A stretch of 63,916 nt of DNA, the filler included, from Lenisia limosa (Eukaryota; Protista; Breviatea): the NCBI GenBank assembly GCA_001655205.1. It is 9 parts of 9 records of this genome, joined end to end, with 100 filler letters (N's around TTAATTAATTAA, not from the genome) between each part and the next. Parts side by side here need not be neighbours in the genome. Positions count along the whole stretch, not along the records: positions 16,893 to 21,114 come from LPNZ01000668.1; 8 more parts are not named here. The stretch is one strand, 5' to 3'. The position numbers were made by a program, and so were the translations under genes. The notes under the pieces are model-generated. The model made no database searches. It was not told the origin of the DNA and worked only from the letters and a program-made list of their open reading frames with translations. Below, one piece after another: positions 2,396 through 21,114 of the stretch; position 1 is the first letter of the stretch; each line of letters starts with the position of its first letter.

Positions 2396-3867
2396 TTAGT
2401 ACTTCAGTCCCATCTTCTTCAGGGGCACGCAGTAACGGGTGGTGGTCTCGTTGCAGCTGGAGCATTAGAAATATAATAATTACAAGTATAATATGATATA
2501 TAATCCATAACCAATAACAAGGGAGAATTTCAAAAAGAAGGTAATCCTTACTTCCAATTTTCATCAGTCGGGCCCAACAAACATTTGAATAGATGGAGAC
2601 TCGCAGCTCTCATCACAGACCACACCATTCTTCATTGCGAAGGTGTAGATGCGCTGTGGGCATGAGCGGTTGGGACCATTTTCACAACATCATTTTCAAA
2701 ACAAATATCTTAAAATATCATCTAATTTGGCCAGCCCCCCCCCCCCCCCCNNNNNNNNNNNNNNNNNNNNNNNNNNNNNNNNNNNNNNNNNNNNNNNNNN
2801 NNNNNNNNNNNNNNNNNNNNNNNNNNNNNNNNNNNNNNNNNNNNNNNNNNNNNGCATTGTACGCACGCGGAATTTCATCTAAGGTAAAGTAAGACAGTTC
2901 AACTTCCACTGTTTAATTTCATCATTCACAATTGATCACGCATGAATATGCTCAGCTCAGCTCACCTCGTAGACTACTGTATCGTTCATGGTGACCTTCT
3001 TAAGACCTTCAGGAATCTAAACCATTACATGTGGTGATACGAAGAGTATGAAATGGCACTTATCATAATGGAACATATCAAGGCGAATTGAAAACTGCAA
3101 GAGCATGTGAATTAAGGAATAATGAACCTATGGATATTTATTATAATAGAGCCTACATGCTTCTAAATCCAGTTTAGCCAGCCCCTCTTGCCCACCTCCT
3201 CATCATCACCAACGTAATCAGCAGCCCACATGCGGAGTTCTTCGGGCTTAACCTGGGGAAGGGGGGGGGGGGTAAGAAAATGTATATAAAAAAACCCCAA
3301 AACCAGATAATTAAAATCATTGGGTTGAATAAAGCCCCCCCCACGGCGCTAGGGTCGTCAAAGTAGAAACTGATGCCGCTCTTCCTTCCCATCAGCTTCT
3401 CAAACTGTTCGGTTAGTAATGTTACGAAGTACATAGTGGGAATTTAGTTCATAAGGACCATGAATGGAATGCGGCACATCTGTCGGGGGAATGTGATTGG
3501 CCAAAAAAAAGTCAGAATTCGCAGAGCCCATACCTGTTCAAAAGCCTTGCAAGAGTCAGAATAAGATCCCTTCCTGCAGTAGACAGCAAGGGTTCCGCCC
3601 TTGATCTAAACGCATCAGCAATTGAACTTCGTAGTGATCTTCTATCATTGCGTACCATGATCAGGAAAAGAAAACCCACAAAATACGACACACAACACTT
3701 CCTCTCACTTTGTTGATTTTGATCTTTCCGAATTTCACAGCAAAGAAGTCGAAGAACCAGAGCACGGTAACGACGAAGGCAACAGCACCAATAAGGCAGA
3801 GGTACAGTGGTGAGGAGTAGACGGTCTCAATGACTGCGCGCATGTCAAATTGGGAAGTGCTTTCCAT
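2396..3867 (-). CDS. TEX264: TEX264-like protein (N-terminal TM anchor + GyrI-like domain)
   Basis: Spliced: MESTSQ...LCLIGAVAFVVTVLWFF...KINK|IKGGTLAVYCRKGSYSDSCKAFEQ|FEKLMGRKSGISFYFDDPSA|VKPEELRMWAADY...|IPEGLKKVTMNDTVVYE|MKFRVRTM...|...TRYCVPLKKMGLKY*. Parallels from memory the TEX264/GyrI pattern (G.Y, YYDNP..VP...R, FMCPL). Orthology not verified by search. Confidence 0.65.
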
Positions 3868-4322
3868 AATTCTTCAATAGAAGGGTAGGAAGGGGACAAG
3901 GGTCAGAGGTTGGAGCAAACGGTCGAAATAAGAAGCAGGAAATGTTTCTCGGTTATTTATGTTTGCTTAACGGAATTCAAAATAAATAACACGCGTAAAA
4001 GGGGTAAAATTTGAATAGAATCGAAGAGAAGAATACTTAAATACTCAAAATTGACCGCCCGGAAATCAGATTCAAGATGTATTCTACTCCAATATTCTTC
4101 GGTAAACTAATAAAATAATGTTAATTATAAAAAATCTGGCTTAATAACAAGACATTGAAAGGATTGTTCCACCCATATTGTTGATTGCGTTAGCGCGAGT
4201 CTATTTAAAGGAAAACAATTTTTCTATTAATCCTTTTCGTTAAACTACTATTGTTCGCAAAAATAACCAACGAACATTAAATTTGCAGACTAAACACTGA
4301 GTAGTCTATAAGGCAAGTCACT

Positions 4323-5648
4323 ATGGAGCCACAGAGAAAAGCGCTTGTCCTAAACGCACTGGCAGCATTGGGCGTTTTTATGTTTTGCATTCTTACCAAC
4401 GAAGCCTCGTGGGAGACTCCTTTCAAAGTCGGATCTGGTTGCCTTCCATTGTTGTTATCGTGTTATTATGGATGGGCTTCAAATACGTTTTCAGGCTGAA
4501 AAAAAGAACCGTTCCACAGTGCATACCATAGACATTTTTCAATACATCATCAGCATCACATCAACACCAACATTAACATTACTTACAACAACTCGTCACC
4601 ATCACCAACAACATTAACATTATCAATATCAACACCAACGTCAACACCATTTACCATCAACATCTTACATGAACAGGCAGACACCCCTGGGTTCTACTCG
4701 ACATTGACAAGACTTCTGGCTGTCCAGTCCATTTTTCTTGGCTTGAGGTTTGCCTCCAAGGTTCGAAGGGATGTCACCGTCAAAATATCGGGGATTCACT
4801 CCTGGTTTTTGGATAGATTTAGCGTTGGTTGCTTGTGTTTGTTATTTTTGTTTTGTTGTTTGGAGTTTTAGATTGTTCGGTTGATTAGTACCTTTACTCT
4901 TTCCACCTCGAAACTGCCTTCGTTTTACTAGTGATGGGATGTGGTACTGCAGAAACAAGTGGCCTCTGCTTTTTTTGTTTTGTTATTATCAACCCTCGTG
5001 TGTTGTCAGCCAACAGAGTCGATTTTGGGCGTTTTTGTTTCATTAATTTTCCAATTTTACCCCCCCCCCCCAGTACATTGAGGCGAAGGACCCACACCAA
5101 GATCAGGTTGTTGTCGGAGCTGAGGCCCCCGTCTACTTTGTCTGTGTCTTAACTTACAGTGGGGGGGGGGGCTTCGTTTCGCTCTCTTTTGCTGTGGGTA
5201 TTTTGAAAATGTTCCATTGCTACCCCCCCCCCCTGTCTGTAAGCTTCTGTTTGTGTTTACTTTATTGGTGGTTGGCTAATTACCTTCAACCCCCTCCCCA
5301 AATCATTTTTCTTACCAGCAGTCTACATGCTGGGTGATGTGTTGCGTTCGGAGTTCGTTTTCGCTGGAGTCTCCGTCATTCTCCTCACAATGTCCTACTC
5401 AATATACGCTGGCAGGATTTATATCCGTGGGGGGGGGGGTATAAATGTTGGATACATCCTATTCAGTCTCAACAGTTTCCTCGTTAAAACTAGCCTCTCC
5501 GTTTTTGCTTGTTAAAAAAGTGACAAAGAGCCAACATAGAACAACCCATCAAATTGAGGCCATTTACTCACCATATGTAGCGACGGTCCACTTCGAGTCT
5601 CCATGCTCCCCCAGAATCCCAGAGAAGGCGGATAAGAAGCAGGATTAA
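4323..5648 (+). CDS. Small multi-pass membrane protein, unknown function
   Basis: Exons MEPQRKALVLNALAALGVFMFCILTNEASWETPFK|...TLTRLLAVQSIFLGLRFASK|YIEAKDPHQDQVVVGAEAPVYFVCVLTY|...SEFVFAGVSVILLTMSYSIYAGRIY|...PEKADKKQD*, with several hydrophobic helices. Confidence 0.55.
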
Positions 5649-6329: not shown

Positions 6330-8050
6330 CTATACCGACACAACCGGCGCAAGAGCGTGAGTTACTTCAGGAACATAGTAGTACACCGCCAGCATGCAGA
6401 CGTAGATCAAAGTCAATGACCATCCTGGGGAGGGGGGTATAATTGAAAGTTTAAAATGGAATATGAGCAAAAATATATGGGGGAAATCATGGGTGAGAAC
6501 CAGGTTTGAATGTAATTAGCCGCCCACCAATAAAGTAATTGGATCTACCATCAATGGAAATGTAGTTTATGATCACCACTGAGATCAGAATGGCAAACCT
6601 GCGGGAGTGAGAAATTGGAGGGATCAAAGTTGTAAATATCACATGAAAAACCAATTCGAGAAATCCTCCACGAAGATTGTCACAAAGCCCCCCCCCCCCT
6701 CGAGAGACTTTACTCTTTATGATCCTAGTTTCAATAGAGACTTTACTCTTTATGATCCTAGTTTCAATAGAGACTTTACTCTTTATGATCCTAGTTTCAA
6801 TAGAGACTATACTCTTTATGATCCTAGTTTCAATAGAGACTTTACTCTTTATGATCCTAGTTTCAATAGAGACTATACTCTTAATGATCCTAGTTTCAAT
6901 AGAGACTTTACTCTTTATGATCCTAGTTTCAATAGAGACTATANNNNNNNNNNNNNNNNNNNNNNNNNNNNNNNNNNNNNNNNNNNNNNNNNNNNNNNNN
7001 NNNNNNNNNNNNNNNNNNNNNNNNNNNNNNNNNNNNNNNNNNNNNNNNNNNNNNNNNNNNNNNNNNNNNNNNNNNNNNNNNNNNNNNNNNNNNNNNNNNN
7101 NNNNNNNNNNNNNNNNNNNNNNNNNNNNNNNNNNNNNNNNNNNNNNNNNNNNNNNNNNNNNNNNNNNNNNNNNNNNNNNNNNNNNNNNNNNNNNNNNNNN
7201 NNNNNNNNNNNNNNNNNNNNNNNNNNNNNNNNNGAAATGCCGATGAGAACCGGGATTTCGAGAAGAGCGATCTGAATCAATAAATTCCGTCAGTTTTTGA
7301 AGACAATCTTGGAGTACAGAGTAAGGAGATATTACTTTTGACAATAAAAGAAGAATAAAAAATGGCAGAAAAATTTGTTGCACAGTATAGGACTTCTGTA
7401 GCGTCACTAAATGACCATCTGTATCAATACTTGAAAACATTCAACTCTCTACCCCCTTCTTCACTAATGGGATTTGTTTGTATATTTTTCATCCTTATTT
7501 CCCAATGTAGGCCAACAGATTTGATTCTGGGGTTTTGTTTTGTACCGTAAATGTTTTAAACCCCCCTCCCCCTCGGACCTGCACTGCAGCGGCGAGTCCG
7601 ATTTCGATGGAAAGGTCAATGCGGTTCTGGAGGGCAAATTGGACCGCGTTCACCATTTCGGCAATGTTCGGTACCAGGGCTGCGGGGGGGGGGGGGGNNN
7701 NNNNNNNNNNNNNNNNNNNNNNNNNNNNNNNNNNNNNNNNNNNNNNNNNNNNNNNNNNNNNNNNNNNNNNNNNNNNNNNNNNNNNNNNNNNNNNNNNNNN
7801 NNNNNNNNNNNNNNNNNNNNNNNNNNNNNNNNNNNNNNNNNNNNNNNNNNNNNNNNNNNNNNNNNNNNNNNNNNNNNNNNNNNNNNNNNNNNNNNNNNNN
7901 NNNNNNNNNNNNNNNNNNNNNNNNTCGAGATCAACACATATCAATAAATCCTCAATCTATTTGGAACTTTCATCTCCCCTTCCCCTACCAATACAAGTTA
8001 CTCCAACAAAGCCCTCGGGAATATCGAGAGCGTTCAGCGTCGGTTTCACC
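6330..8050 (-). CDS. Vnx1/CAX-type cation/H+ exchanger (CaCA family), 3' part only
   Basis: Exons VKPTLNALDIPEGFVGVT, AALVPNIAEMVNAVQFALQNRIDLSIEIGLAAAVQ, IALLEIPVLIGI, FAILISVVIINYISIDGRSNYFI, GWSLTLIYVCMLAVYYYVPE. These match the Vnx1/CAX alpha-2 repeat (ALVPN..E..NA..FA...I.LS.EIG) and the C-terminal DG.SNYF motif. Confidence 0.85.
6703..6943. repeat. 33-bp intronic minisatellite (at least 7 units, runs into a gap)
   Basis: GAGACT(T/A)TACTCTT(T/A)ATGATCCTAGTTTCAATA repeated head to tail with no spacers, inside an intron of the exchanger gene. Confidence 0.95.
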
Positions 8051-8639
8051 TTGACAATGAGGGGGAGGTAATGACTTAGAAATAATATATAGCAATGAGA
8101 AAAAAAAAAATGNNNNNNNNNNNNNNNNNNNNNNNNNNNNNNNNNNNNNNNNNNNNNNNNNNNNNNNNNNNNNNNNNNNNNNNNNNNNNNNNNNNNNNNN
8201 NNNNNNNNNNNNNNNNNNNNNNNNNNNNNNNNNNNNNNNNNNNNNNNNNNNNNNNNNNNNNNNNNNNNNNNNNNNNNNNNNNNNNNNNNNNNNNNNNNNN
8301 NNNNNNNNNNNNNNNNNNNNNNNNNNNNNNNNNNNNNNNNNNNNNNNNNNNNNNNNNNNNNNNNNNNNNNNNNNNNNNNNNNNNNNNNNNNNNNNNNNNN
8401 NNNNNNNNNNNNNNNNNNNNNNTAGGAAAATTTATGAAACAAAACAAAAGCCCAAATCAAGTCTATATATAGCAAGGTTGTATCTGGCCGAAGCCATCCA
8501 CAACATCACGATTATCAGAGATTATGAATTAAAGTATATATTATTCACCAATCATTTGCCTTACAACTCTGTGCACGCGGCTTTATGCGTGCCTCTAGTC
8601 AAAGATCATCATTATTACGCTCATCTCTCACCGTCGTCG

Positions 8640-8810: not shown

Positions 8811-9359
8811 NNNNNNNNNNNNNNNNNNNNNNNNNNNNNNNNNNNNNNNNNNNNAGGGAGCCATAACCTGAACTGTGAGGAGTGTGGCGTGTGTGTGTTT
8901 TTGTTCTTTTTTTAAAAAAAATGTTTGGTTGGATATTCAAACACTCATACATTGCTTTTCTAATCTTGTCTTATTGAAATAACCCCCGGTTTTAGAACGA
9001 GTTTCTTCATAGTAGATACAAAATACATGTATATCACTATAGTATGATATGTATACAAATTATACTATATTATACTATATCATATGATATAATACTATAG
9101 CTATACTATATTAAATATGAAATATATAATACATTTATCGATATGTAAAATATAATTTTGAATGACCTGAACTGTGAGTAATCTGTGTGTGCACGTTGTA
9201 AGGCAAATGATTGGGTGACTTAATATGATACTATAATAAAAAAAACTCTGATTAGCGTGATGATGACTTCGGTCAGATACTACCTTCTTATTTCTCATTG
9301 CTACATGAATATACTATTCTATGTTTGCATAGAAAGGGGGGGGTACGATCCCCCATTAG

Positions 9360-10925
9360 CATAATACCCCACAAACCGAGTGGCTGAACCCCGTACTACT
9401 CCGTCTTGTGCTCTACAGAATTAATAATAATTGTAAAAAAAAAATGGGAGGGAGGGGGAGTAAAATTAACAAATTCATATACTATGCATAGTATTTGAAA
9501 AAAAATAAAAGCCCAAAATCAACTCTGATATACCCCCCACTGCGCCAGCGCTCATGTCCATTAAGGGGTGATCCCCTACATCCACGGAAATTATGGAACT
9601 GCTTTGGGACCGGCTGCTTTCCTTCTATATATGGTAAGTCTTTCCTAATTTGGTAATTCTTTTCTTTAATACTTGCGAGTGTTTACTGATAGTATTGTAT
9701 CTATATAGCTATGATAGCAATGAGAAATACAAAACAAGGTTGAATAATACATAGCGATATAGCATTAAAATGATATGGCTGTTTCTCTTAAAATATGTAT
9801 GAATGCTGGGTGAAATAATATACTAAATAATATACTACAATTCAATATCTTTTTATTTCGCATTGCTATATTATACAAATAGTGACCGGGATAAGTCGAC
9901 TCTCTTTGGGAAATTATTGAACAAATCGGTCAAGACTTATCCCGGGCAATCGCCCAGGTATGTATGGGGCACACCTCCCCCTACGGAGTTTTGGATTTGT
10001 AGAATGGAGTCGAAATTGAGGTTTGAGCTTGATGGGAGTGACTTGAAAGAAGTATTTGGGACCATTAGCTGCGGGTTTACCTGGGGGGGGGAGAGTGAAC
10101 AAAAGAAATATGTTATTACTGCGATAATGTCGATAAAAGCCTACAATAATCGATAGATCTAGTCCCCCTCCCCCCACAGTGGTAGAACTAATGCCATAGA
10201 CGGCAATTTCACCCTGACTGGAGTGGACAACACTCGGCAACTGACTAAGCTTCACAGCCACTCTCTTTCTCTTTCCGCCATCGTCAATCATAAGCCAAAG
10301 ACTCATGGACGTATCAGTCATGTCTCCAAGAAGCATAGTCCTAAATCATAAGCCAAAGACTCATGGATGTATGTATCAGTCANNNNNNNNNNNNNNNNNN
10401 NNNNNNNNNNNNNNNNNNNNNNNNNNNNNNNNNNNNNNNNNNNNNNNNNNNNNNNNNNNNNNNNNAAATCCTGAAGATTATTAGAAAGAAACAAAATCCT
10501 GATAGCATCTTAAATAAAATCCTGATAGCACACTAAGACTGAGAAAGAAATAAAGTCCTGATAGCACATTCAGAGCTTCACCCCCCCATTATACACCCCC
10601 ATTAGACACCCCCATACCCGCTGAGGCCTTCGGCAAACTTCTGCGTACACACCATAGTACCTGGGTTACGTAAGTAATGCATGTAATATAAGTATTTCAC
10701 ACCTCAACGTATACGCCTTTANNNNNNNNNNNNNNNNNNNNNNNNNNNNNNNNNNNNNNNNNNNNNNNNNNNNNNNNNNNNNNNNNNNNNNNNNNNNNNN
10801 NNNNNNNNNNNNNNNNNNNNNNNNNNNNNNNNNNNNNNNNNNNNNNNNNNNNNNNNNAATAAAACGGCCCGTGGTCATGGTAGGTCCGGTTAATTGGAAC
10901 TTCGGAGCTCCACACACAACCACGC
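9360..10925 (-). CDS. Fragmentary spliced gene, unknown product
   Basis: Exon-like segments with GT/AG ends: WSSEVPINRTYHDHGPFY, YYGVYAEVCRRPQR, DDGGKRKRVAVKLSQLPSVVHSSQGEIAVYGISST, GKPAANGPKYFFQVTPIKLKPQFRLHSTNPKL. Frames not fully linked. Confidence 0.4.
9881..9945. mobile_element. Hairpin/MITE-like element family R4, copy 2
   Basis: Perfect 12-bp inverted repeat CCGGGATAAGTC (9886-9897) / GACTTATCCCGG (9934-9945); shares AAATCGGTCAAGAC with 312-389. Confidence 0.55.
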
Positions 10926-12009
10926 CGGCGACAGACCTAAAACACAGTAAAGACGTGTTTCGATGTTGCCCTAGATTTTGAAATAATTATTTATTGTTCA
11001 AATAAAAATAGTTAGTTTTTGTTTTCTCTCACTCTCTCTCTCCATATCCCCCACCACACACTCCATAAAACAATCCGTATATTATTGGAATATCTCTTCT
11101 GAGCGTGATGGTGTGGACTGCTTCAACCAGACACAACCTTTTTTTTTATTTCTCCTTGATATCATATGATATATCCCCTCCCCCATCCCCCTGCCAGTAG
11201 CCAANNNNNNNNNNNNNNNNNNNNNNNNNNNNNNNNNNNNNNNNNNNNNNNNNNNNNNNNNNNNNNNNNNNNNNNNNNNNNNNNNNNNNNNNNNNNNNNN
11301 NNNNNNNNNNGATCTGAAAAATATCGATATTTATCGAGAATTCAGTCTTTTTTGAACCAGAAGCTCTATCGCTACACCCCAGCTCCATCATCTTCCCTAA
11401 CACCCCAGCTCCATCATCTTCCTGAACACCCCAGCTCCATTATAGCAGCACCGCACGCACATAAGACCATTATCATATCATACGATATAAATAGCAATGA
11501 GAAGTTAAAAAAAAAAGGTTGTATCTGGCCGAAGCCATCCACACCATCACGCTGATAAGAGATACCGGATTATAGTTTATTAATATGATGTATTACGTCT
11601 ATTATATACCCCCCCCACCTCCCGGTAGCAAGGCCGGCACGGACTCTGATTCCGCCTCGGAAGTGCTTATTTAGAATTTCCACCTGGACAATAACCACTT
11701 ATGNNNNNNNNNNNNNNNNNNNNNNNNNNNNNNNNNNNNNNNNNNNNTTAATTAATTAANNNNNNNNNNNNNNNNNNNNNNNNNNNNNNNNNNNNNNNNN
11801 NNNCCCCCACATGGCTTTTTAGATAGTATATCATATCATAGTATATGATAGTACATAGTATATAAATATTCTACATTGTATACCATATATCAATATATGA
11901 GATATAGCTATATGCATAATATATATAATATATGTTATACTACTATTACGTAATATAATACCTTTGATATTCATTCGTTATCTTTGATTACCTAACTCCT
12001 ATTTAGAAG

Positions 12010-15000
12010 AATTTTACGGCCTTAAGAAGTACCGCGCTGAAAAAAACATGGGAAATGTTCAAACACCTAACAAAAACTTTACAGAGGTATTTTTATCAGA
12101 GAAAACTCTTTGTTTTATCACTTTGAAAGATGATAGATATATGATTGTTTTGAAACTCCTTTTCTTTTGACTGTTATAGATTATTGAAAGATACAACATT
12201 TACAAGAAACTATTGAAACTGATAGATTTTGATGATATTCAAAAACTCTGTTTCAATGTCATGGAGAGAGAAAATGTAAGATGCGGATTATGATGTGATA
12301 ACGAAGAGATATGAAGTTGACAAGATACTGAAGGTGATTTAACCAAGTATTCTTGCTAAATTCAGATGTTTATACGAAGACTTCTTTACTCATAATCCAG
12401 ACCACCAACCTTCAAGATCGGTTTGACGCTGTCTTCGTTGATGAATTCCAAGATACCAGTTTGGAGCAGGTGGGGTATTCTGGTGTTTGCTTTGTATTTG
12501 TTACAAAAACTTGATTGTGATTAAACCAGTTTTTTCATTTTCAGGTGCAATTTCCTTTTTTGATTCAGAGCATGACAGTTAATATTTAGCTTGGAATTTT
12601 GAAGTATATCGTTGGAGAAAAGAAAAATGTTATGGCTGTTGGTGATCCGGTAAGCACCTTTATTGAGATATTGTATCATTTAAATGGGTGTTTACAATTA
12701 CTATTTAGATGCAGATGATTTATACCTGGAGAAATGCTTGCGCTCAGAATCGACAGTGAGGTTATTTTTCTATTGAAACTGAACTCTTTCAAAATAACAA
12801 ATCTTTATAATCTAGGGACTTCATTGAACACTTCCAAGCTATTACTCTCCGTTTGACTACAAATTATCGTTCTTCGCCTCTTGTCATCGAAAAGTCATTA
12901 CACATGCTCAAAACTATGTTAAACAAGTATCAAGTGTTTGTGGGCTTCTTGGAGTGTCTTAGTACAATTTTAGTAGATATACTCAAGGCGGGATACTATT
13001 ACATGATAACTATGTTCATTGGTACATATGTATGTCTTGAGAGCATGACAGACTTGAAACTTGTTTTTCAAAATGAATCTACAGTTAAAGAGGACTAAAC
13101 AGCTGAGACAACTAACTATAAAGGGAAAATTATAACCCAAATAATTCAAAGACTAGACTTAAATACACCAGGACTTGAGGGTACCTGGGTGAGAAAAGTA
13201 ATAGAATACTGTATAGTACAGGTATAGTACAATATTATAGAGGTTGCGAAAAACACAACTTTTTCGGAAGAAACAATTGCCGCTTCCGATGGCTTCCGGC
13301 AAGGAAAGTCTCTGAATTTTTTGGCAACTTTCTTCTCAGATATCCTCGGATGTATTAGAGTTGTCCCTTCTTCTTCACCAGTTCCCTTTCAATAATTAAT
13401 ATTTGTTACTGGATATCAAATGTATAAGCTGCATGTTGTATAACATGCCTATTTGTCCTTGGGAGAGCTATGATGAGTTTTTTTACAAGGCAGCACCCAC
13501 TTTCTTCAGCACAATAAACATCGCATTAACATTAGAATATTACAATAAGGGGATTTAGAAGCATAAAAAGAGAAGTGATAAAGACATTGGCATCTCCAAC
13601 ATCCAACTCAACAATATCTTATCTTGTATTGAAGAAAGTGGGCCAGTGTTGGGGGGAATCTTTGCAGAACCTGAACACCAAAAACCAGTCAGAAAGCCCT
13701 TCAGATAAAACTCGTACAAAGTTTACAGAACCTCTCATCTAGTATATTAGTATGATCATTACATATTCATATACCATATATTTCATATGAAAGTGATTAT
13801 CAATTATTTTATGTGAAACCTTTTAGAACCTTTAATGAAGGCGACCTGGAGATGCACGCACCTGAAGGCAAAACCAGCGAGGAGTCTTTTTTCCGAATTG
13901 AAACGTTTGACAATGTTAACGAAGAAGCCACATTCTGTAGGGAGGGGTCATCACATTTTGATTGTGATATTTCGTTTTTTTATCAACCTTTTTACAAGGT
14001 TCTATTCCAAAGAAAAAAAGAGTATTTCATACCCCACTAACTTGTAATAGATGCAAAGACACTCCAGCCAAAGTTGGATCACTCTGTCGCAGTCCTCAGC
14101 AGGTTTGTCACAAAGCAAATCCCCAAGAACCCCTTTTGTCACACATAACTCCCTTCCTTTTTTTTAAAAGCCTTTTTTGATGAAAATTTGAAACAAGGAT
14201 GTAAAGACTATTTGGGGTAAAGCCACGGCCACAGCGATAACCTCTTCCAGTAACACTACCTCCATTATTCCCCCATTTCTTAACTCTCTTGATTTGTCTT
14301 AATTCCTGAGCTTTAATCGGAGGCTTCTTCTTAATATTTCAGTACCAATATTATTCTATTCACATGTTGGGGACAAAGAGTGGGAAATAGTTGGAATTTT
14401 CAAAATATAATTGTCAAAAAATTCAAAGATTGGATTTACACTCAGGAGTAGATATAATATTATGTACATACAAAATCATATATTATGATATTATAACTAG
14501 TATTTTAGATATGATATACTATATTGTATGCTGAGGACGCACGCAGAAAGCTGTGTGCACAGAGTTGTAAGGCAAATGATTGGGTGAATTAATACTATAC
14601 TATAATGCAATATCTCTTATAAGCCTGATGGTGTGGACGACTTCGGCCAGATACATCCTTTTCTGTATTTCTCATTGCTATATATCATATATTGACATTG
14701 GGCGGTGTAATGTACCGACTATCTAGATTTCACTCACGCCTTGACACCCTTGAGAAGGAGCTCAAAAAAAGGGGTAAAACAACAATACGCCTTGGCAACA
14801 ACGATATCAACTCTTTTACAAGAAAAATCATCCAGCTTATTAAAGGTATGCTGTTAGTAATTGTATTTTTTGTGGCTACTATTTGTGACTATTCTAATGC
14901 TGCAGCTGCCGTAAAGCCAGGCATTGCCCCCGACCTTCTTTNNNNNNNNNNNNNNNNNNNNNNNNNNNNNNNNNNNNNNNNNCATTTCCTGTTCTCATGA

Positions 15001-16639
15001 TTTTTTTTATGGTCTTTCGCAGTTACAGTGATGACTGTTTATCTAAATGATATGATATCTTCATTGATGTGGATGACGACTTCCGACACTAATTACGTGG
15101 TCAGGTTTGCCCCAAGGAGCCCAATTCAGATCAGTGTACTGACATTCATTCTATGCTGAGTCAGGTAAGGTATTTTGGTCAAGGATAGGCATCAATTAGT
15201 AATTTTCTTTTGATGTAAAATGGCAGTTTCCTTGGAAATATTAGAACAACATACAAGTGACCACAATTATCACTTTAGAATGAGCCCCAAGTTGACAAAC
15301 TGACCGAACCTGATCTCAAACTGGCTGCTGAAGAAGTAAGGATTTGATGATTAAACCTTATTTTTATCAACCNNNNNNNNNNNNNNNNNNNNNNNNNNNN
15401 NNNNNNNNNNNNNNNNNNNNNNNNNNNNNNNNNNNNNNNNNNNNNNNNNNNNNNNNNNNNNNNNNNNNNNNNNNNNNNNNNNNNNNNNATTACAATTTCA
15501 TTTGACTATGTCAGTTTTTCGATCCGCTACATGCTTAGAATTGCTGCTGATATTATCCTTGAGAAGCATCCCAGCGATAGTGCCACAATATTTGATTCTT
15601 TGAAGGTAATGACTTTTGTTCATATTTTTGGTCTTGGCGAGATAGCTGTGTTGTATTTCCACTTTGTGAGAAATTAGATTTACTCTTTCAATTTCAGTTG
15701 TCACTGATGTAGGTGCTGATCAAATGTTGCCCACTCATCTCGCTTGAACCTTTCACCCAGGTTTTGGGGCTCTCTCTACGTTACGATATCGTGTTACTTC
15801 AAATATTATGGCATTTGGTGTTTTTTTTGGTGTATTTTTATTTTGCGAACATACCCCTTGAAGAAGAGGTTTTTTTACTTTTTTTAGCAATTACAAAAAC
15901 TTTGTGACAGGGTGACGCTTTATATTAAAGGAGACTCAGAAAGTGACAGTATGTTATCAGGGGTTCGTTGACGATTTTGTATGGCAATAGATCGGTTGAT
16001 TTCCACACTCAATTCCTTATTATCTTCAGAAACAGCCGTTCACCTTCTCACTGCGCACTCTGCAAAAGGTCTTGAAGTAGGCTGAAATAAATAGTATTAA
16101 ATTATCATTGAATTTTGCTCAAGGCAAACAAAACAACGTTAATTCGCCTTCATTACGCAGTTCGACGAAGTTGTCATCCTTGGTGCTGAAGCTGACACGT
16201 TCCCAGCTTTCAATTGCCAAACTTTAGAGGCCGAGATAGAAGACGGGAGGCTATTCTATGGTTAGGTCACTCGGCAGAACCCAACATTGTGTATTCTACC
16301 CAAAGCTTTGTAAATTTGCCGAACTGTGGAAAATTTTACACTTTTTGCAGTTAAACTTGCCTCATTTAGAGTGAAATTTCACCCAAGGGGTAACTTTACC
16401 CAAATTTTAACAAATAACGTCAACTTTTAGCAATAATTTTTCAAATCATAGTGGAAAAATTAACAAATGTTGCCAATCGAAGTAATCTGCCAGTTACATT
16501 CAGTTCAATTTATTGACCTTTGAAAGTCACTTTTCTAGTTGCAATGACTCGTGCAAGGAAACAACTGCATATTTCGAAAACCAAAAGACAAGGGTGGGTG
16601 AACAAGAAAAAATCACCATTTTTGGAGGGACTTGAGTAA
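12010..16639 (+). CDS. UvrD/PcrA/Rep-family (SF1A) DNA helicase, intron-rich, 5'-partial
   Basis: Motifs in order across exons: IDFDDIQ, FDAVFVDEFQDTSLEQ (II), VMAVGDP|MQMIYTWRNA (III), TTNYRSSP (IV), ETFDNVNEEATF, SVAVLSR, LLTAHSAKGLE|FDEVVI (V), GRLFY|VAMTRARKQL (VI); stop 16637-16639. Confidence 0.9.
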
Positions 16640-16892
16640 CCTTCCCCCTGCTGTCTTGTTTATTTGTTAATAGTGTGTTATTATTAGATTATTATTGGCT
16701 TTTCTGTTGTTTATTTTATGATGAAAGCTGTTGAAAATTTTGAATTGAATCATTGGTAAGGGTGTTTGATGGAATCATGTTACTGATACTACNNNNNNNN
16801 NNNNNNNNNNNNNNNNNNNNNNNNNNNNNNNNNNNNTTAATTAATTAANNNNNNNNNNNNNNNNNNNNNNNNNNNNNNNNNNNNNNNNNNNN

Positions 16893-19041
16893 TAACAAAA
16901 GTGGCATTTGCATTTCCAGTATTTTGAAATCTGATAATATAATCTAAATATTCATCTGTTTCATCAAGAGTTATAGTTAAGCCTTGCAGAACTCTTTTGT
17001 CATTAGGGTCAAAGGCATTTACAACAATTTGGTCTAATTCATATAAGTTGTCATTTGGTGTAAAATCATTTGGGTTTGGTGTTACTATTGCGGTAAAGCT
17101 TAAAATATCGTCTGTATTTACAATTGGTGGTGTAAAATTTTGCATTGTAATATCAATCTCAATGCTTTCAAATGGTTGGATAGTTCCTAAACTAAAGTTT
17201 AAACTATTGGTTGTTGTGCTTGTTTCATTAGGAATAGCTGACACATATGATTGTTTTGTATTATCAAAAGTAAACTCAGCTGAAATACCATTAATAATTT
17301 CTGTACCAATATTTTTTATTACCAATTTATAACGAGACTGAAAACCTGGTCTAGCCTGATTTATTGGTAAAATAGTAATATTTAAATCCTCTACGATTTG
17401 ATTTGCTGTTAAACAAAAATCAACTTGTTCTGTGGACATTGTCGAAAAATCAACGGATTCACTTTGAGGTGTTGCAGTAAAATAATTGGGTAAATTGGAA
17501 ATATAAACAGTTTGATTTCCTGTATGAACAGGTATCTCATAATTACCGTTGATTACAATACTAGAAACATCAAACATATTTAAATCTTCGGCCTTAACTA
17601 GTAAATTTGTTGCTTCAATATCTAAAATATTACATCCATCATTATTTAAATCGTAATATACAGAACCGACGATGGTGTTACAATTAGCTGAATCACCATC
17701 TCCAGAAAAATACCAGCCTTTGTTGTATTGCAAATAATTGTGAGCATTAAAATTACAATATTCAAGACCATGCACACCAAGACTTATATTGTTTATATCT
17801 GTTGAAGCTAATTTTAATAATAATTTATCATAATGATAAATACTTAAATTTGAGTAGGATAACATATCACCCCAACCATAAGAATAACTAAGGCTAGAAA
17901 AATCCCAAGATGACAAATCTTGATCAAAACTTGTTGCATTTTTAAACATTTCATACATGTAATTAACATTTGAAGTGTTCCAATTATCTAATGGCTGATT
18001 AAAACTAGATGCACCAAAAAACATGCTCCATAAAGTTGTTACATTGGATATATTCCAACTATTTAAGGGTTTATTATAATTTGAAGCATATGCAAACATA
18101 CTACTCATATTAGTGACGCTTGAAACATCCCAAATATCAATAGACTGATTGTAACTTGAAGCTTGATAAAATAACCGTGTCATGTTGGTTACATTAGAAA
18201 CATCCCAACTATCGATGGGTTGGTTAAAGGATGTTGCGCCTTGAAAAACACTGACTAATTCTGTTAAACTAGATGTATTCCAATTACCAATAGGTTGATT
18301 AAACGAAGTTGCCTCAAAAAACATCTCATTTATATTAGAAACATTAGAGACATCCCAACTATTTAAAGATTGATTATAATTAGAACAACCTGAAAACATA
18401 TATGACATATCTGTGGCATTAGACACATTCCAATTATCTAAGGATTGATTGAAATTTGATGCATTTGCAAACATTTCATACATATAATTAACGTTTGAAG
18501 TATTCCAATTATCTAATGGCTGATTAAAACTAGTACATCCCCTAAACATTCCGCCCATATTAGTGACATTAGAAACATCCCAATTATTAATATTTTGATT
18601 GAAATTTACACATCCATCAAACATAAATGAAGTATCGGTGACTTGACTTAAATCAGGAGCATCTGTAGCGTTAATAACTAAGTTTGAGCAATTACCAAAC
18701 ATACTTGCCGTAGAATTCCAAACAATATCTCCCCATTGTTCCACACTTAATACATTCTCTTTTGTGTATTCGTTTAAATTTAATTCAGGAAATATGCCTG
18801 AAATACTAATGTTGTATATGCCTGTTTGAGAGTATGAATGTTGTAGAGACTGAGTTTGATTATTTAAAATTGTTCCATCTCCGAAGTCAATGGTAAAATT
18901 ATAATTTGGACTATAAGAGTATACAACTAAAACAAAATCAGAATTATCAATTGTTGCTTCCCATGTCAATATAAAGGGTTCTTGCGCTCTAATACTAATA
19001 GTCATTAAAAAAAATATAAAAAATAAGGTTTTTTTCATCAT
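16893..19041 (-). CDS. BspA/DUF285 repeat surface protein with signal peptide and DPNDK-type C-terminal domain, 3'-truncated
   Basis: MMKKTLFFIFFLMTISIRAQ signal peptide; FTIDFGDG; about 10 repeats of FNQPLDNWNTSNVxxMxxMF; AFDPNDK...YIIRFQNTG region as in probable T9SS cargo proteins. The ORF track's 16837 end lies in the linker. Confidence 0.9.
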
Positions 19042-19077
19042 ATTGTTTTTGAATTCGGTCTTTACTAGGTCAAACTT

Positions 19078-19215
19078 ATGCCCAACGGTTTTGTATAACC
19101 GTCAGTTACGGGTTAAAGTACTCAAATTTTTCGGTTTAGGACTGACGTTAGCAATTCCGAGTGGATTCGGACGTAGTCGAATCCGCCGTAATTGCGGTTA
19201 TACATTGTTGTGCTT
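19078..19215 (-). repeat. attC-like palindromic site C (138 bp)
   Basis: Minus strand: AAGCACAAC-aat-GTATAACCG-caa-TTACGG...CCGTAA-ctga-CGGTTATAC-aaaacc-GTTGGGCAT, with an inner hairpin GGATTCG/CGAATCC. Confidence 0.75.
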
Positions 19216-20009
19216 TCGTTATTTTAGTCATATTCCTCGATTAATTTATAGAGGTTTTCTAATTCAGTTTTAAGTCTTTGTTAGTTTTCAATCTGTACAT
19301 TAGAGTTATAGAATATATTGTCTACTAAACTCTCAAACTTTAAAATATTCAGCACATTTAAATTATTGTGGTTGCTAAATTTTGAAGGTCCGATTAGTTC
19401 TCCATGAGCAGTGTGTTCATAGTCCATCTGTCTGAAGCTGATATGCTCATATATAAACGGATAAAAATATTCATTAAGGTCTTCGTTCATGTATTTTTCT
19501 CCACTTCTAACCTCTTCGACTAAAGATGGCAAACCGTATAAAAGTGTCTTTAAGGAATCGGATTTAATGAGTGCGACTTTTCCAGTATTCAGTCCTTCAT
19601 TTAAGGTTCCGTTTTTAAACTCCATGTTGCCATTTGCCATAGATATATTAATTAGGCTGTCCAATGTCTTGGAAGAAAGTTTAGTTATATCTTCTCCAAA
19701 CATTTTTAAAATAGCCAATGAACTACTCCTCTGGTTTTCTTTTTTTTCAATTTCCTCTTGTGTAAAACCTATATTACTTTTTACTTCTGCTTTTAGTCGT
19801 GCAACAAACTCATTAGATTCTTTTAAATTGCTTTTGCTTATGTTCCAGTTATTAATCTGTAATGCAATCAATATTCCAATAACGACAAGAATAATTTCTC
19901 CAATCGCATACTTTAAATACTTTCCAGTTTTACCTTCAGAGAGTAAGTTTTGTCTGATTTTTCTAAAAAATTTTATCATTGGTTATTGGTTGGTCATAAT
20001 GAAGCACAA
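19086..20009 (-). mobile_element. Putative gene cassette carrying the DUF6090 gene (924 bp)
   Basis: Starts with (G)TTGTGCTT at 20010-20002. The exact complement AAGCACAAC is at 19215-19207, 8 nt after the in-frame downstream stop at 19224-19226. Confidence 0.7.
19281..19979 (-). CDS. DUF6090 family protein (possibly truncated by a premature stop)
   Basis: MIKFFRKIRQNLLSEGKTGKYLKYAIGEIILVVIGILIALQINNWN is the characteristic Flavobacteriia DUF6090 N-terminus. Confidence 0.9.
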   Translation of the reverse strand: MIKFFRKIRQNLLSEGKTGKYLKYAIGEIILVVIGILIALQINNWNISKSNLKESNEFVARLKAEVKSNIGFTQEEIEKKENQRSSSLAILKMFGEDITKLSSKTLDSLINISMANGNMEFKNGTLNEGLNTGKVALIKSDSLKTLLYGLPSLVEEVRSGEKYMNEDLNEYFYPFIYEHISFRQMDYEHTAHGELIGPSKFSNHNNLNVLNILKFESLVDNIFYNSNVQIEN

Positions 20010-20136
20010 CGTATTGTATATGAAAAGTAGCGGATTTTACGCACTAACTTTTCAGATTATAAATGGCATTAAATTTATAAAATTCATTTTCATTTTAGCA
20101 CTTAAACCGCTATTTATTATATACGTTGTTAGCTGC
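20002..20136 (-). repeat. attC-like palindromic site B (135 bp)
   Basis: Minus strand: GCAGCTAAC-aac-GTATAT-aataaa-TAGCGG...CCGCTA-cttttc-ATATAC-aatac-GTTGTGCTT. Confidence 0.75.
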
Positions 20137-21065
20137 TGCCTTTTTAATTTGGTTCAATCTTTAAGGATGTCATTGTCAAAGAACCTCCAACGGGTTTATC
20201 GTTAAATAAGGTTATTTCTTCCTTTTCTTCTCTTAAAGCCAAGGTGTAGAGTAGTGGCAAATAGTGTTCGGGTGTAGGAATAGCCAAATCAAAAGCTCTT
20301 CCTTGTGATTTGAAATCAATCAAGGGTTGAAAATCGCCACTTAAAATATGATTTTTCATTTTTTCGTTGGCTTCTGTTGCCCAATCAAAAGCAAATTCTT
20401 CGTTGAGTTTGTTCCAAGCAACCATTCGCAGGTTATGTACCATATTTCCACTTCCTATAATAAGTACACCTTTTTGTCGAAGAGCACTAATTTGTTTCGC
20501 CAATTCGTAATGATAATGGGCAGGTTGTGTATAGTCTATGCTCATTTGAATTACGGGAATGTCTGCATTTGGATAAAGGTGCTTTATAACACTCCACGCT
20601 CCGTGGTCAAGTCCCCATTTGTCATCTAATTCTACCTTTGTTTTCGTGATTAGCTGTTTGGTTTGGTTTGCTAATTCTGGACTTCCTGGTGCTGGATATT
20701 GTATATCAAATAATGCTTGCGGAAAACCACCAAAATCGTGAATAGTTGGTGGGTTTTGCATTGCTGTTACATATGTTCCTCTGGTTTCCCAATGCGCAGA
20801 AATACATAGTATGGCGTTTGGCTTTTCTATTTCTTTCCCAATTTTTCTAAAGCCTTGAACAAATTCGTTTTCTTCAATAGCATTCATTGGGCTTCCGTGT
20901 CCAAGGAATAATACAGGCATTTTATCTGTATTACTCATTGATGAAGTCATTTTATTTAAATCTTTTAAATTCATAGTAGAACCTATTAATGGTAATAATG
21001 CCAATGATTTTAAGAACCTTTTTCTATCCATTTTATAGGTATTTGCTTATTCAGGTTGCAGCTAA
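20010..21065 (-). mobile_element. Putative gene cassette carrying ygiD (1056 bp)
   Basis: Starts with (G)TTAGCTGC at 21066-21058. The exact complement GCAGCTAAC is at 20136-20128, 7 nt after the stop. Confidence 0.7.
20144..21031 (-). CDS. ygiD: 4,5-DOPA dioxygenase extradiol (LigB-fold)
   Basis: MPVLFLGHGSPMNAI, ISAHWET, TIHDFGGFP, GLDHGAWSV, GSGNMVHNL and AIPTPEHYLPLLY motifs. Confidence 0.93.
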   Translation of the reverse strand: MDRKRFLKSLALLPLIGSTMNLKDLNKMTSSMSNTDKMPVLFLGHGSPMNAIEENEFVQGFRKIGKEIEKPNAILCISAHWETRGTYVTAMQNPPTIHDFGGFPQALFDIQYPAPGSPELANQTKQLITKTKVELDDKWGLDHGAWSVIKHLYPNADIPVIQMSIDYTQPAHYHYELAKQISALRQKGVLIIGSGNMVHNLRMVAWNKLNEEFAFDWATEANEKMKNHILSGDFQPLIDFKSQGRAFDLAIPTPEHYLPLLYTLALREEKEEITLFNDKPVGGSLTMTSLKIEPN

Positions 21066-21114
21066 CGTGTTTGGCTATGGTTTCGTTGCGTGGTTTAAGC
21101 ACTTAATTTAGCAA
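21058..21114 (-). repeat. attC-like site A, 3' half only (truncated by scaffold end)
   Basis: Minus strand ...CATAGCC-aaacac-GTTAGCTGC; same GTT core and spacer geometry as sites B and C. Confidence 0.6.

Follow-up and report, generated by a model that had tools for sequence, protein, structure and literature searches.

What are the palindromic sites that separate neighbouring genes in record LPNZ01000668.1 of the Lenisia limosa genome assembly (GCA_001655205.1)? The window that we analysed is a stretch of 63,916 nucleotides (nt), filler included, joined from nine parts of nine records, and this record fills its positions 16,893 to 21,114. The piece holds three open reading frames (ORFs), every one on the minus strand, and three sites, which we call A, B and C. 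We consider it likely that these are attC-type recombination sites delimiting LigB, DUF6090 and DUF285 cassettes in a Mesonia-like Flavobacterium chromosomal array, with a cognate Xer-like recombinase. The features are listed here along the minus strand; R1 is the covariance model described below, and sites B and C are both among its training sequences, so that their R1 scores are self-scores.

21058 to 21114, minus strand: site A, 3′ part only, truncated at the piece edge; read from the sequence.
20009 to 21065, minus strand: LigB cassette, from the TT of the site A GTT to the G of the site B GTT.
21031 to 20144, minus strand: ORF of 295 amino acids, LigB-family extradiol dioxygenase (Pfam PF02900, 7.7e-25).
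20002 to 20136, minus strand: site B, attC-type, 135 nt; read from the sequence, R1 self-score 109.8 bits, E 3e-20.
19085 to 20009, minus strand: DUF6090 cassette, bounded by GTTGTGC at the end of site B and the complement GCACAAC at the start of site C.
19979 to 19281, minus strand: DUF6090 ORF, 232 amino acids (Pfam PF19578, 3e-09).
19078 to 19215, minus strand: site C, attC-type, 138 nt; read from the sequence, with fold z-scores (below) and an R1 self-score of 110.4 bits.
16893 to 19085, minus strand: third cassette, start only, beginning after the site C GTT and truncated at the piece edge.
19041 to beyond 16893, minus strand: ORF of more than 715 amino acids, DUF285/PKD secreted repeat protein (Pfam PF03382, 5e-97; PKD; DUF7619).

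Site B consists of R″ GCAGCTAAC, a spacer AAC, an L″ box beginning GTATAT, an L′ box ending CATATAC, a spacer AATAC, GTT (20010-20008) and GTGCTT. Site C has R″ AAGCACAAC, a spacer AAT and an L″ box beginning GTATAACCG in its 5′ arm, and an L′ box ending CGGTTATAC, a spacer AAAACC, GTT (19086-19084) and GGGCAT in its 3′ arm, around a loop with an inner GGATTCG/CGAATCC hairpin. The outer cores fit RYYYAAC/GTTRRRY (GCTAAC...GTTGTGC in site B, GCACAAC...GTTGGGC in site C) and the L boxes are paired. An earlier note on this DNA had described the same order in both sites, namely an AAC core, a 3-nt spacer, GTATA(A/T), TATAC, a 5-6-nt spacer and GTT, together with the extra hairpin in the loop of site C, and all of these are present; its remark that B and C share little central sequence was confirmed by comparison. 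It had also matched site A to the other two on its surviving half. The visible end of that site reads CATAGCC (L′ box), a 6-nt spacer AAACAC, GTT (21066-21064) and AGCTGC, so that the spacer and GTT geometry agree with the match, and the inner box, CATAGCC rather than TATAC, does not.

The ends of the sites are related in a particular way: in the window, each GTT is followed by 6 nt whose complement stands just ahead of AAC in the neighbouring site downstream. Thus GTTAGCTGC of site A is the exact complement of GCAGCTAAC of site B, and GTTGTGC of site B pairs with GCACAAC of site C; the complementarity joins the ends of neighbouring sites, not the two ends of one site. Such neighbour-to-neighbour complementarity is a hallmark of integron cassettes and is not predicted by RNA motifs, terminators or repetitive extragenic palindrome (REP)-like repeats; site-specific exchange at GTT within an imperfect palindrome leaves exactly such a trace. 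In the loci fetched by the time of a stricter pattern scan there were 199 pairs of consecutive sites on the same strand, and 95 of them were complementary at all six positions; the corresponding figure was 0.8% for random pairs and 1.5% for the two ends of a single site. These boundary statistics come from the stricter pattern only, which includes the conserved A and C described below; a looser pattern that omits them was set aside for its high background (860 matches, against about 650 for neighbouring geometries).

The covariance model R1 was built from 15 sites in the window and five fetched loci, from Mesonia sp. K7, Mesonia profundi and Algibacter, Flavobacteriales and Bacteroidia metagenome-assembled genomes (MAGs). 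Its structure has 17 pairs, 8 of them with compensatory changes, and 94.9% of cells are paired, a proportion that falls to 24-39% once the partners are slid by 1-3 columns, demonstrating covariation. Invariant in the 15 aligned sites are the AAC and the A that follows it, the GTATA/TATAC box, an A in the stem, the A at position 4 of the 3′ spacer, and GTT. The stem includes two conserved non-Watson-Crick positions; the invariant A (alignment column 24) faces a nearly invariant C. Read from the alignment, these positions look less like distinct bulges than like 1x1 mismatches (A-C in the top strand, G-T in the bottom strand) or small internal loops. Classical attC sites have extrahelical bases instead, a G on the L″ arm and a T six base pairs beyond it, which direct binding to the bottom strand.

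R1 found matches in Mesonia hippocampi, in Lutibacter and Gaetbulibacter, and in several MAGs of Flavobacteriaceae, Cyclobacteriaceae and Saprospiraceae, every one on the gene strand, and in all it recovered hundreds of related sites in Flavobacteriaceae chromosomes and phage contigs, cultured Polaribacter phages included. In distant members GTATA is replaced by GGCTA, GTGTA, AAATA or GCGTA, each with a matching partner; the features kept family-wide are the unequal spacers (3 nt against 5-6 nt), an A directly following AAC and a C directly preceding GTT. The GTATA/TATAC box, which the earlier note had taken as a trait of the family, therefore marks one subfamily. The shared layout begins with 6 nt, AAC, a 3-nt spacer starting with A, and an imperfect stem with conserved mismatches leading to a variable loop; the 3′ half then comprises the partner stem, a spacer of 5-6 nt with C as its last base, GTT and 6 nt. 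Classical attC sites usually have spacers of 5-6 nt in each arm (PMC5027507), as opposed to 3 nt (R″-L″) and 5-6 nt (L′-R′) here, which justifies the label 'non-classical' that the earlier note had given to the spacers. It is strongly supported that the sites are attC-type recombination sites of a lineage-specific family with this non-classical spacer geometry, a large family specific to Bacteroidota.

Many of the sites lie in phages. Scanning IMG/VR with an exact pattern gave at least 120 loci, and in 80 of these R1 finds 229 sites, many of them closely packed in arrays whose cassettes are short; the terminases, SNF2 helicases and methylases encoded there identify the loci as phages. The same SNF2 helicases, terminases and methylases had been our first recombinase candidates in the phage loci, and were dropped as phage markers that include no recombinase. 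From AAC to GTT, the sites of phage loci L081-L282 fall into classes of 45-48, 85-88, 120-126 and 185-195 nt, corresponding to whole sites of about 57, 97, 135 and 200 nt. One 57-nt site (...TGATAAACAA...TTGTTTATCA, TCGGAC, GTT) recurs almost unchanged in many unrelated phage contigs; Vibrio repeats recur likewise in superintegrons. The largest class, at about 200 nt, exceeds the published attC range of 57-141 bp (PMC5027507).

Could such elements act as structured RNAs or as transcription terminators, of the Flavo-1 kind or another, and simply happen to lie between genes? They are intergenic and hairpin-forming, and in bacterial arrays they are found just 3′ of ORFs. Like Rfam Flavo-1, they are repeated structured elements of Flavobacteria. 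They do not, however, match the Flavo-1 model, and the correspondence suggested in the earlier note failed: cmscan of the piece at E≤10 gave no Flavo-1 match and nothing real, and a scan of nine array-rich loci at the Rfam gathering threshold returned one tRNA only, with no match to the sites. The boundary rule, and the swapping of cassettes to which we now turn, would also be left unexplained. Together with the orientation and folding of the sites, given below, this makes the RNA or terminator explanation extremely improbable.

A genome scan with the LigB protein as query led to a locus of Mesonia sp. K7 (L001) whose protein is 100% identical. At the DNA level the cassette (window 21073-20008, L001 9959-11025) is 99.25% identical over 1068 nt, with 4 interior substitutions and 2 changes in the 3′ spacer. 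Homology begins at site A, just 5′ of GTT, and a near-identical copy of site B follows LigB in K7 (L001 10896-11031). The neighbours of the cassette differ on both sides and the sequence beyond the GTT cores is unrelated; otherwise L001 shares with the window only a 90% homologue of site C (L001 8969-9105). One LigB cassette, in other words, sits among different neighbours in two related genomes, which shows cassette sharing. L001 has nine sites on the gene strand, from 8969 to 20470, and the boundary rule holds at all seven junctions read, of the eight between them. The array starts with an attI-like GATATAACGA|GTTGGGCTT, in which GTT and the following 6 nt complement R″ of the first site, and ordinary genes lie upstream of this attI-like GATATAACGA|GTT.

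Three further observations concern these cassettes. The first cassette of K7 (L001 8416-8962) carries a ParE toxin gene after a small ORF that is probably its antitoxin; toxin-antitoxin cassettes are frequent in sedentary chromosomal integrons. In the Algibacter MAG (L007 56-4824), a 4.6-kb block of six genes ends with LigB and is bounded by the cores of the single-gene window cassette, GTTAGCTGC and GCAGCTAAC, and in Mesonia profundi (L008, 83 to the locus end; LigB 3540-4427) the block starts alike and the locus ends just after LigB. Both blocks have the first ~14 nt after GTT in common with the window cassette, and the LigB cassette of the window and K7 may be a deletion derivative of a multi-gene cassette.

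Comparison of sites and cassettes also locates the exchange. Where one site body stands before differing cassettes, the spacer stays with the upstream site body; where differing sites stand before one cassette, the sequence after GTT stays with the downstream cassette. Since the spacer goes with the site and the post-GTT sequence with the cassette, exchange takes place at or adjoining GTT, within about 3 nt. A crossover 5′ of the spacer, prompted by a spacer difference between the window and K7, was rejected on the same ground, the spacer following the upstream site body. Such precision bears on a second alternative, in which repeats resembling REPs or miniature inverted-repeat transposable elements, or T4-type promoter-stem-loop repeats, shuffle genes by homologous or illegitimate recombination with no dedicated recombinase. 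The sites are indeed abundant, dispersed and palindromic, and lie in plastic regions of large phages. Exchange points confined to the vicinity of GTT, 6-nt complementarity between neighbouring sites and not within a site, strict site polarity, and the tight linkage of arrays to one recombinase family and an attI-like site nevertheless make shuffling of this kind very improbable.

Which enzyme might serve these sites? Array neighbours in other loci, considered as recombinase candidates, turned out to be housekeeping genes or IS110 or IS91 transposases; an IS91 Y2 transposase with a Xer-like fragment (L018 19362-20820) was taken as borne by the insertion sequence, being distal and on the wrong side of the Flavobacteriales array. 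A phmmer search with Escherichia coli XerC over all ORFs identified a recombinase beside the array of locus L088, and its relatives were fetched by protein homology alone. The phage loci obtained in this way contain 210 R1 matches, all on the opposite strand to the recombinase gene and nearly all upstream of it. Of the sites that a pattern scan recovered in the phage loci, 220 lie upstream of the gene with the opposite orientation, 4 upstream with its own orientation and 9 downstream, and a site is present in 46 of the 48 phage loci that have at least 1.5 kb of upstream sequence. In 19 loci the start codon is preceded, at a distance of 24-44 nt (about 35 nt), by an attI-like GTT whose following 6 nt pair with R″ of the first site detected; in most cases it lies inside a conserved TATATA(A/T)-rich motif that adjoins the GTT. 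The array is upstream of the gene and the cassette ORFs point toward attI. The neighbours of these recombinases include ribonucleotide reductase, a DnaB-like helicase, an SbcC-like nuclease and RIIA; loci of this layout are large virulent-type phages.

A metagenome scan with the recombinase alignment returned bacterial relatives at 40-49% identity, arranged differently. Here all 31 R1 matches, in 19 loci, lie downstream of the recombinase gene on the same strand, as do the cassette ORFs, and in 11 loci the stop codon is followed, at a distance of 39-212 nt, by the attI-like GTT, which again complements R″ of the first site detected. The genes upstream of these recombinases encode PurL, IlvD, LeuB, Tgt and molybdopterin-oxidoreductase/NrfD respiratory-complex proteins, housekeeping functions that identify the contigs as bacterial chromosomes. 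Their sites score 85-102 bits with R1, about as Mesonia sites do, and site C of the window is 85% identical to the first site after one bacterial-type recombinase (L303 5683-5819). The bacterial layout fits the window, where ORFs and site top strands lie on one strand. In four of the loci a short inverted repeat precedes the TATAA(N3-4)|GTT of the bacterial attI-like site (L344 10830-10868, L339 2640-2680, L307 2570-2605 and L326 10850-10885); it may be the terminator of the recombinase gene or part of the site.

These loci demonstrate the linkage of recombinase, attI-like site and array, and they share one polarity: in both layouts, every site runs from R″ to R′ as one moves outward from attI. 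Another constant is that the recombinase gene is never divergent from the cassette ORFs but shares their strand. What changes is the relation of ORFs to site top strands, the same in 9 cases and opposite in none in bacteria, the same in 4 and opposite in 74 in phages. An orientation that flips relative to genes between bacteria and phages and stays constant relative to attI and the recombinase argues against the RNA or terminator explanation.

The phage-type recombinases have 263-270 amino acids, and all six catalytic residues, R-K-H-R-H-Y, are kept in 64 of 64 distinct proteins, with a K-to-H spacing of 58-60 residues as against 68 in XerC. The region that aligns to residues 182-265 of IntI4 (84 residues) comprises 36 residues in the phage-type recombinase, indicating that the IntI additional domain is absent. 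The proteins align with archaeal XerA in a single stretch, and XerA_Arch is the nearest NCBIfam model of the phage type (181-191 bits, cut-off 220). The integron-integrase model TIGR02249 (integrase_gron) gives 129-246 bits overall and 129-158 bits for the phage type, against a cut-off of 265, with the match always split in two. Bacterial-type recombinases are longer, at 345-386 amino acids, and combine a Xer-like core with an N-terminal extension of 75-110 amino acids that the phage type does not have; the IntI insertion is absent from all eight that we tested. The extension of L357 (9662-9985), the sole one tested, has no Pfam match, and equivalent extensions occur in L300, L303, L326, L339 and L307. 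The cognate enzyme is most likely a Xer/IntI-clade recombinase without the IntI additional domain (I2 helix), judging from the array-linked proteins.

Relatives are present in cultured phages. A DNA search with the phage array against isolated phages gave no match, and a protein search with the recombinase succeeded: Cellulophaga phage Ingeline and Polaribacter phages Freya and Leef encode proteins, 37-40% identical and annotated "integrase", which the description of these phages reads as signs of a temperate lifestyle, integrons being unmentioned (PMC8776804). Ten Freya isolates, of 43,978 to 48,920 bp, differ by 0-4.1 kb of cassettes directly upstream of the "integrase". The cassette junctions coincide with GTT cores: homology of Freya_1 to Freya_10 sets in at the attI-like GTT (L283 4100-4098) and that of Freya_8 at the GTT of the site at L283 894-1029. 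Freya_5 shares about 13% of the Freya_10 region (L283 1-4150), in two pieces. Danklef phages (Danklef_1-5), of another genus, have 38% of that region in common at 97% identity. Within it, a site of ~195 nt, delimited by eye (L283 3795-3990), overlaps most of the annotated ORF Freya10_10 (3844-4089). The overlap could mean that the loop of the long site class codes for a small protein, or else that this ORF is a false annotation.

Polaribacter phage P12002L, with about ten R1 matches, connects the family to published experiments. Qi et al. (2023) named two P12002L sequences attC sites, called with standard tools (PMC9892861); neither is among the R1 matches in that phage. P12002L_attC1 (L201 30003-30061) is a true family member of the 57-nt class, and it was not recombined by IntI1 in E. 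coli (PMC9892861). P12002L_attC2 corresponds to a terminal junction with GTTAGGCAC, read on the reverse strand, and this junction sequence, with GTTAGGC, was recombined by IntI1 (PMC9892861). That study reported phage clusters of attC sites lacking integron integrases (CALINs), P12002L among the phages; it treated the P12002L sites as ordinary attC sites and reported no cognate recombinase, attI or site family for this phage.

These assays bear on a third alternative, that the sites are ordinary attC sites and depend on a canonical IntI whose gene lies in another part of the genome, the window being a classical CALIN or the distal part of a chromosomal integron. Much here resembles classical integrons such as those of IntI1 or Vibrio cholerae VchIntIA/IntI4 (PDB 2a3v): RYYYAAC...GTTRRRY palindromes with L boxes, an unpaired spacer and a variable loop, a structure that is kept while the sequence varies, a bottom strand that folds better, exchange at GTT, mostly single-ORF cassettes with one toxin-antitoxin pair, and an attI-like site adjoining a tyrosine recombinase gene. 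For sites A, B and C the alternative can draw on R″/R′ cores that fit the classical consensus, a boundary rule that is the classical one, lengths of 135-138 nt inside the published 57-141 bp range (PMC5027507), reports in general terms of integrons in Bacteroidota, and the recombination of the P12002L_attC2 junction by IntI1. Yet the recombinases linked to the arrays, 64 of the phage type and the eight bacterial-type proteins tested, lack the IntI insertion and fall below the NCBIfam integron-integrase cut-off, and their genes lie on the strand of the cassette ORFs, unlike the integrase gene of classical integrons, which is divergent from cassettes expressed from Pc. The spacers depart from the classical 5-6 nt per arm, the true member P12002L_attC1 was not recombined by IntI1, and IntegronFinder 2.0 found in Bacteroidetes only In0 elements and one complete integron, in Salinibacter (PMC9024848). 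We therefore regard service by a canonical IntI as quite unlikely.

Reverse integrons, in which the integrase gene is inverted, offer a closer parallel in layout. They have canonical IntI proteins and classical attC sites. As in the 'reverse integron' of Treponema, mentioned in 10.1101/2020.05.09.085589 (Treponema denticola being an example), the recombinase gene of the bacterial layout is oriented toward attI and the cassettes and shares a strand with the cassette ORFs; unlike reverse integrons, the enzyme here has no additional domain and carries the N-terminal extension of 75-110 amino acids.

Both strands of site C fold better than 200 of 200 shuffles (z -3.4 and -3.7); the fold of site B is weaker against shuffles, at z about -2.1, and strand asymmetry is weak in the window's own sites. 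Of 521 sites across the family, 443 (85%) fold more stably on the bottom strand, the mean difference between strands being 1.8 kcal/mol, and among bacterial-type sites the bottom, non-coding strand is the more stable in 26 of 32; for classical attC sites the strand difference is 2.12 kcal/mol (PMC5027507). The asymmetry tracks site polarity and not transcription, which points to a folded strand of DNA, not an RNA, as the object of selection; in bacteria the better-folding strand is the non-transcribed one, a further point against structured RNAs or terminators.

The fourth alternative keeps a Xer-like enzyme and dispenses with the folded strand: recombination would be double-stranded, with L′-spacer-R′ as a Xer-type core site, as in XerC/D pdif modules. 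The sites of pdif modules are 28-bp, double-stranded and dif-like, and are served by the host's housekeeping XerC/D. Gene modules of Acinetobacter plasmids are bounded by such Xer-type recombinase sites, according to PMC7399989; the enzyme here is likewise Xer-like, whereas the sites are structured palindromes of 57-200 nt, and the array is headed by a dedicated recombinase gene and an attI-like site. Over its full length the enzyme can be aligned with XerA/XerC/XerD-type proteins, and it has no I2 helix, a feature that PMC7790495 links to the switch toward single-stranded substrates; we count this in favour of double-stranded recombination. The spacer AAGACC is common to five of the nine K7 sites, possibly by homogenisation of an overlap region. 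Classical double-strand exchange by tyrosine recombinases requires identical overlap regions, and the spacers of neighbouring sites in one array differ widely. The whole palindrome of 45-200 nt is moreover kept structurally, with compensatory changes far from the core, and neither this nor a better-folding bottom strand in 85% of sites would be needed by a double-stranded core. Double-stranded recombination is thus, in our view, unlikely.

Several points weigh against reading sites A, B and C as attC-type sites with a cognate Xer-like recombinase. The window is without any recombinase gene, and none was found in K7 L001 (20.9 kb; Pfam on large ORFs, tblastn at E<0.1), so that the enzyme assigned to this genome is a candidate proposed from other loci by similarity of sites. 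The spacer of site B differs between the window (AATAC, 20011-20015) and K7 (AAGACC, L001 11017-11022) with the rest identical, a difference not expected from a pure G|TT exchange. Among phage sites that are identical in other respects, too, it is the spacers that vary most. Finally, the failure of IntI1 on P12002L_attC1 fits a different cognate enzyme, yet leaves the sites unproven as substrates of an integrase. With these points weighed, we still favour attC-type sites and a Xer-like enzyme, in line with the earlier note's proposal of a lineage-specific recombination-site family, which gains support from the boundary rule, cassette sharing, covariation, strand folding and the linkage of recombinase and attI.

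By analogy with integrons, and in view of the fold asymmetry, the bottom strand would fold into a hairpin and a tyrosine recombinase would cut and exchange strands at the conserved C-GTT; the 5′ end of a cassette would then carry its own R′ part beyond the exchange point. Catalysis by the linked recombinase, the single-stranded folded substrate and the exact position of cleavage are what we infer from the arrays.

More broadly, we lean towards the view that Flavobacteria and their phages carry a distinct, undescribed class of integron, with a Xer-like integrase that has no I2 domain, an attC geometry of its own (unequal spacers of 3 and 5-6 nt, and a strand asymmetry based on mismatches), and two forms, a chromosomal one in the order recombinase, attI, cassettes and a phage one in the order cassettes, attI, recombinase, the phage form rearranging cassettes among co-isolated phages. 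We found no published description of this platform in the literature covered, which excludes subscription journals. Surveys discard recombinases without the additional domain, which is held to be necessary for activity on folded attC sites (PMC4889954). Hundreds of orderly arrays adjoin domain-less recombinases, and if these are active, the origin of single-strand cassette recombination becomes directly testable. The class would have arisen through a separate invention of cassette capture, or else it would preserve an ancestral stage in the evolution of integrons. A large pool of accessory genes in marine Flavobacteria would have been overlooked, and phages, including many cultured flavobacterial ones, would be carriers of complete cassette-capture platforms. 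The two calls made by standard tools in P12002L, against about ten R1 sites, show that a dedicated model is needed.

Two minor observations concern array contents. The third cassette of the window (DUF285/PKD, 16893-19041) is, at more than 2.1 kb, unusually big for an integron-type cassette. In one phage array region, a tRNA gene (L290 7852-7937) lies between the sites at 7599-7736 and 8235-8369.

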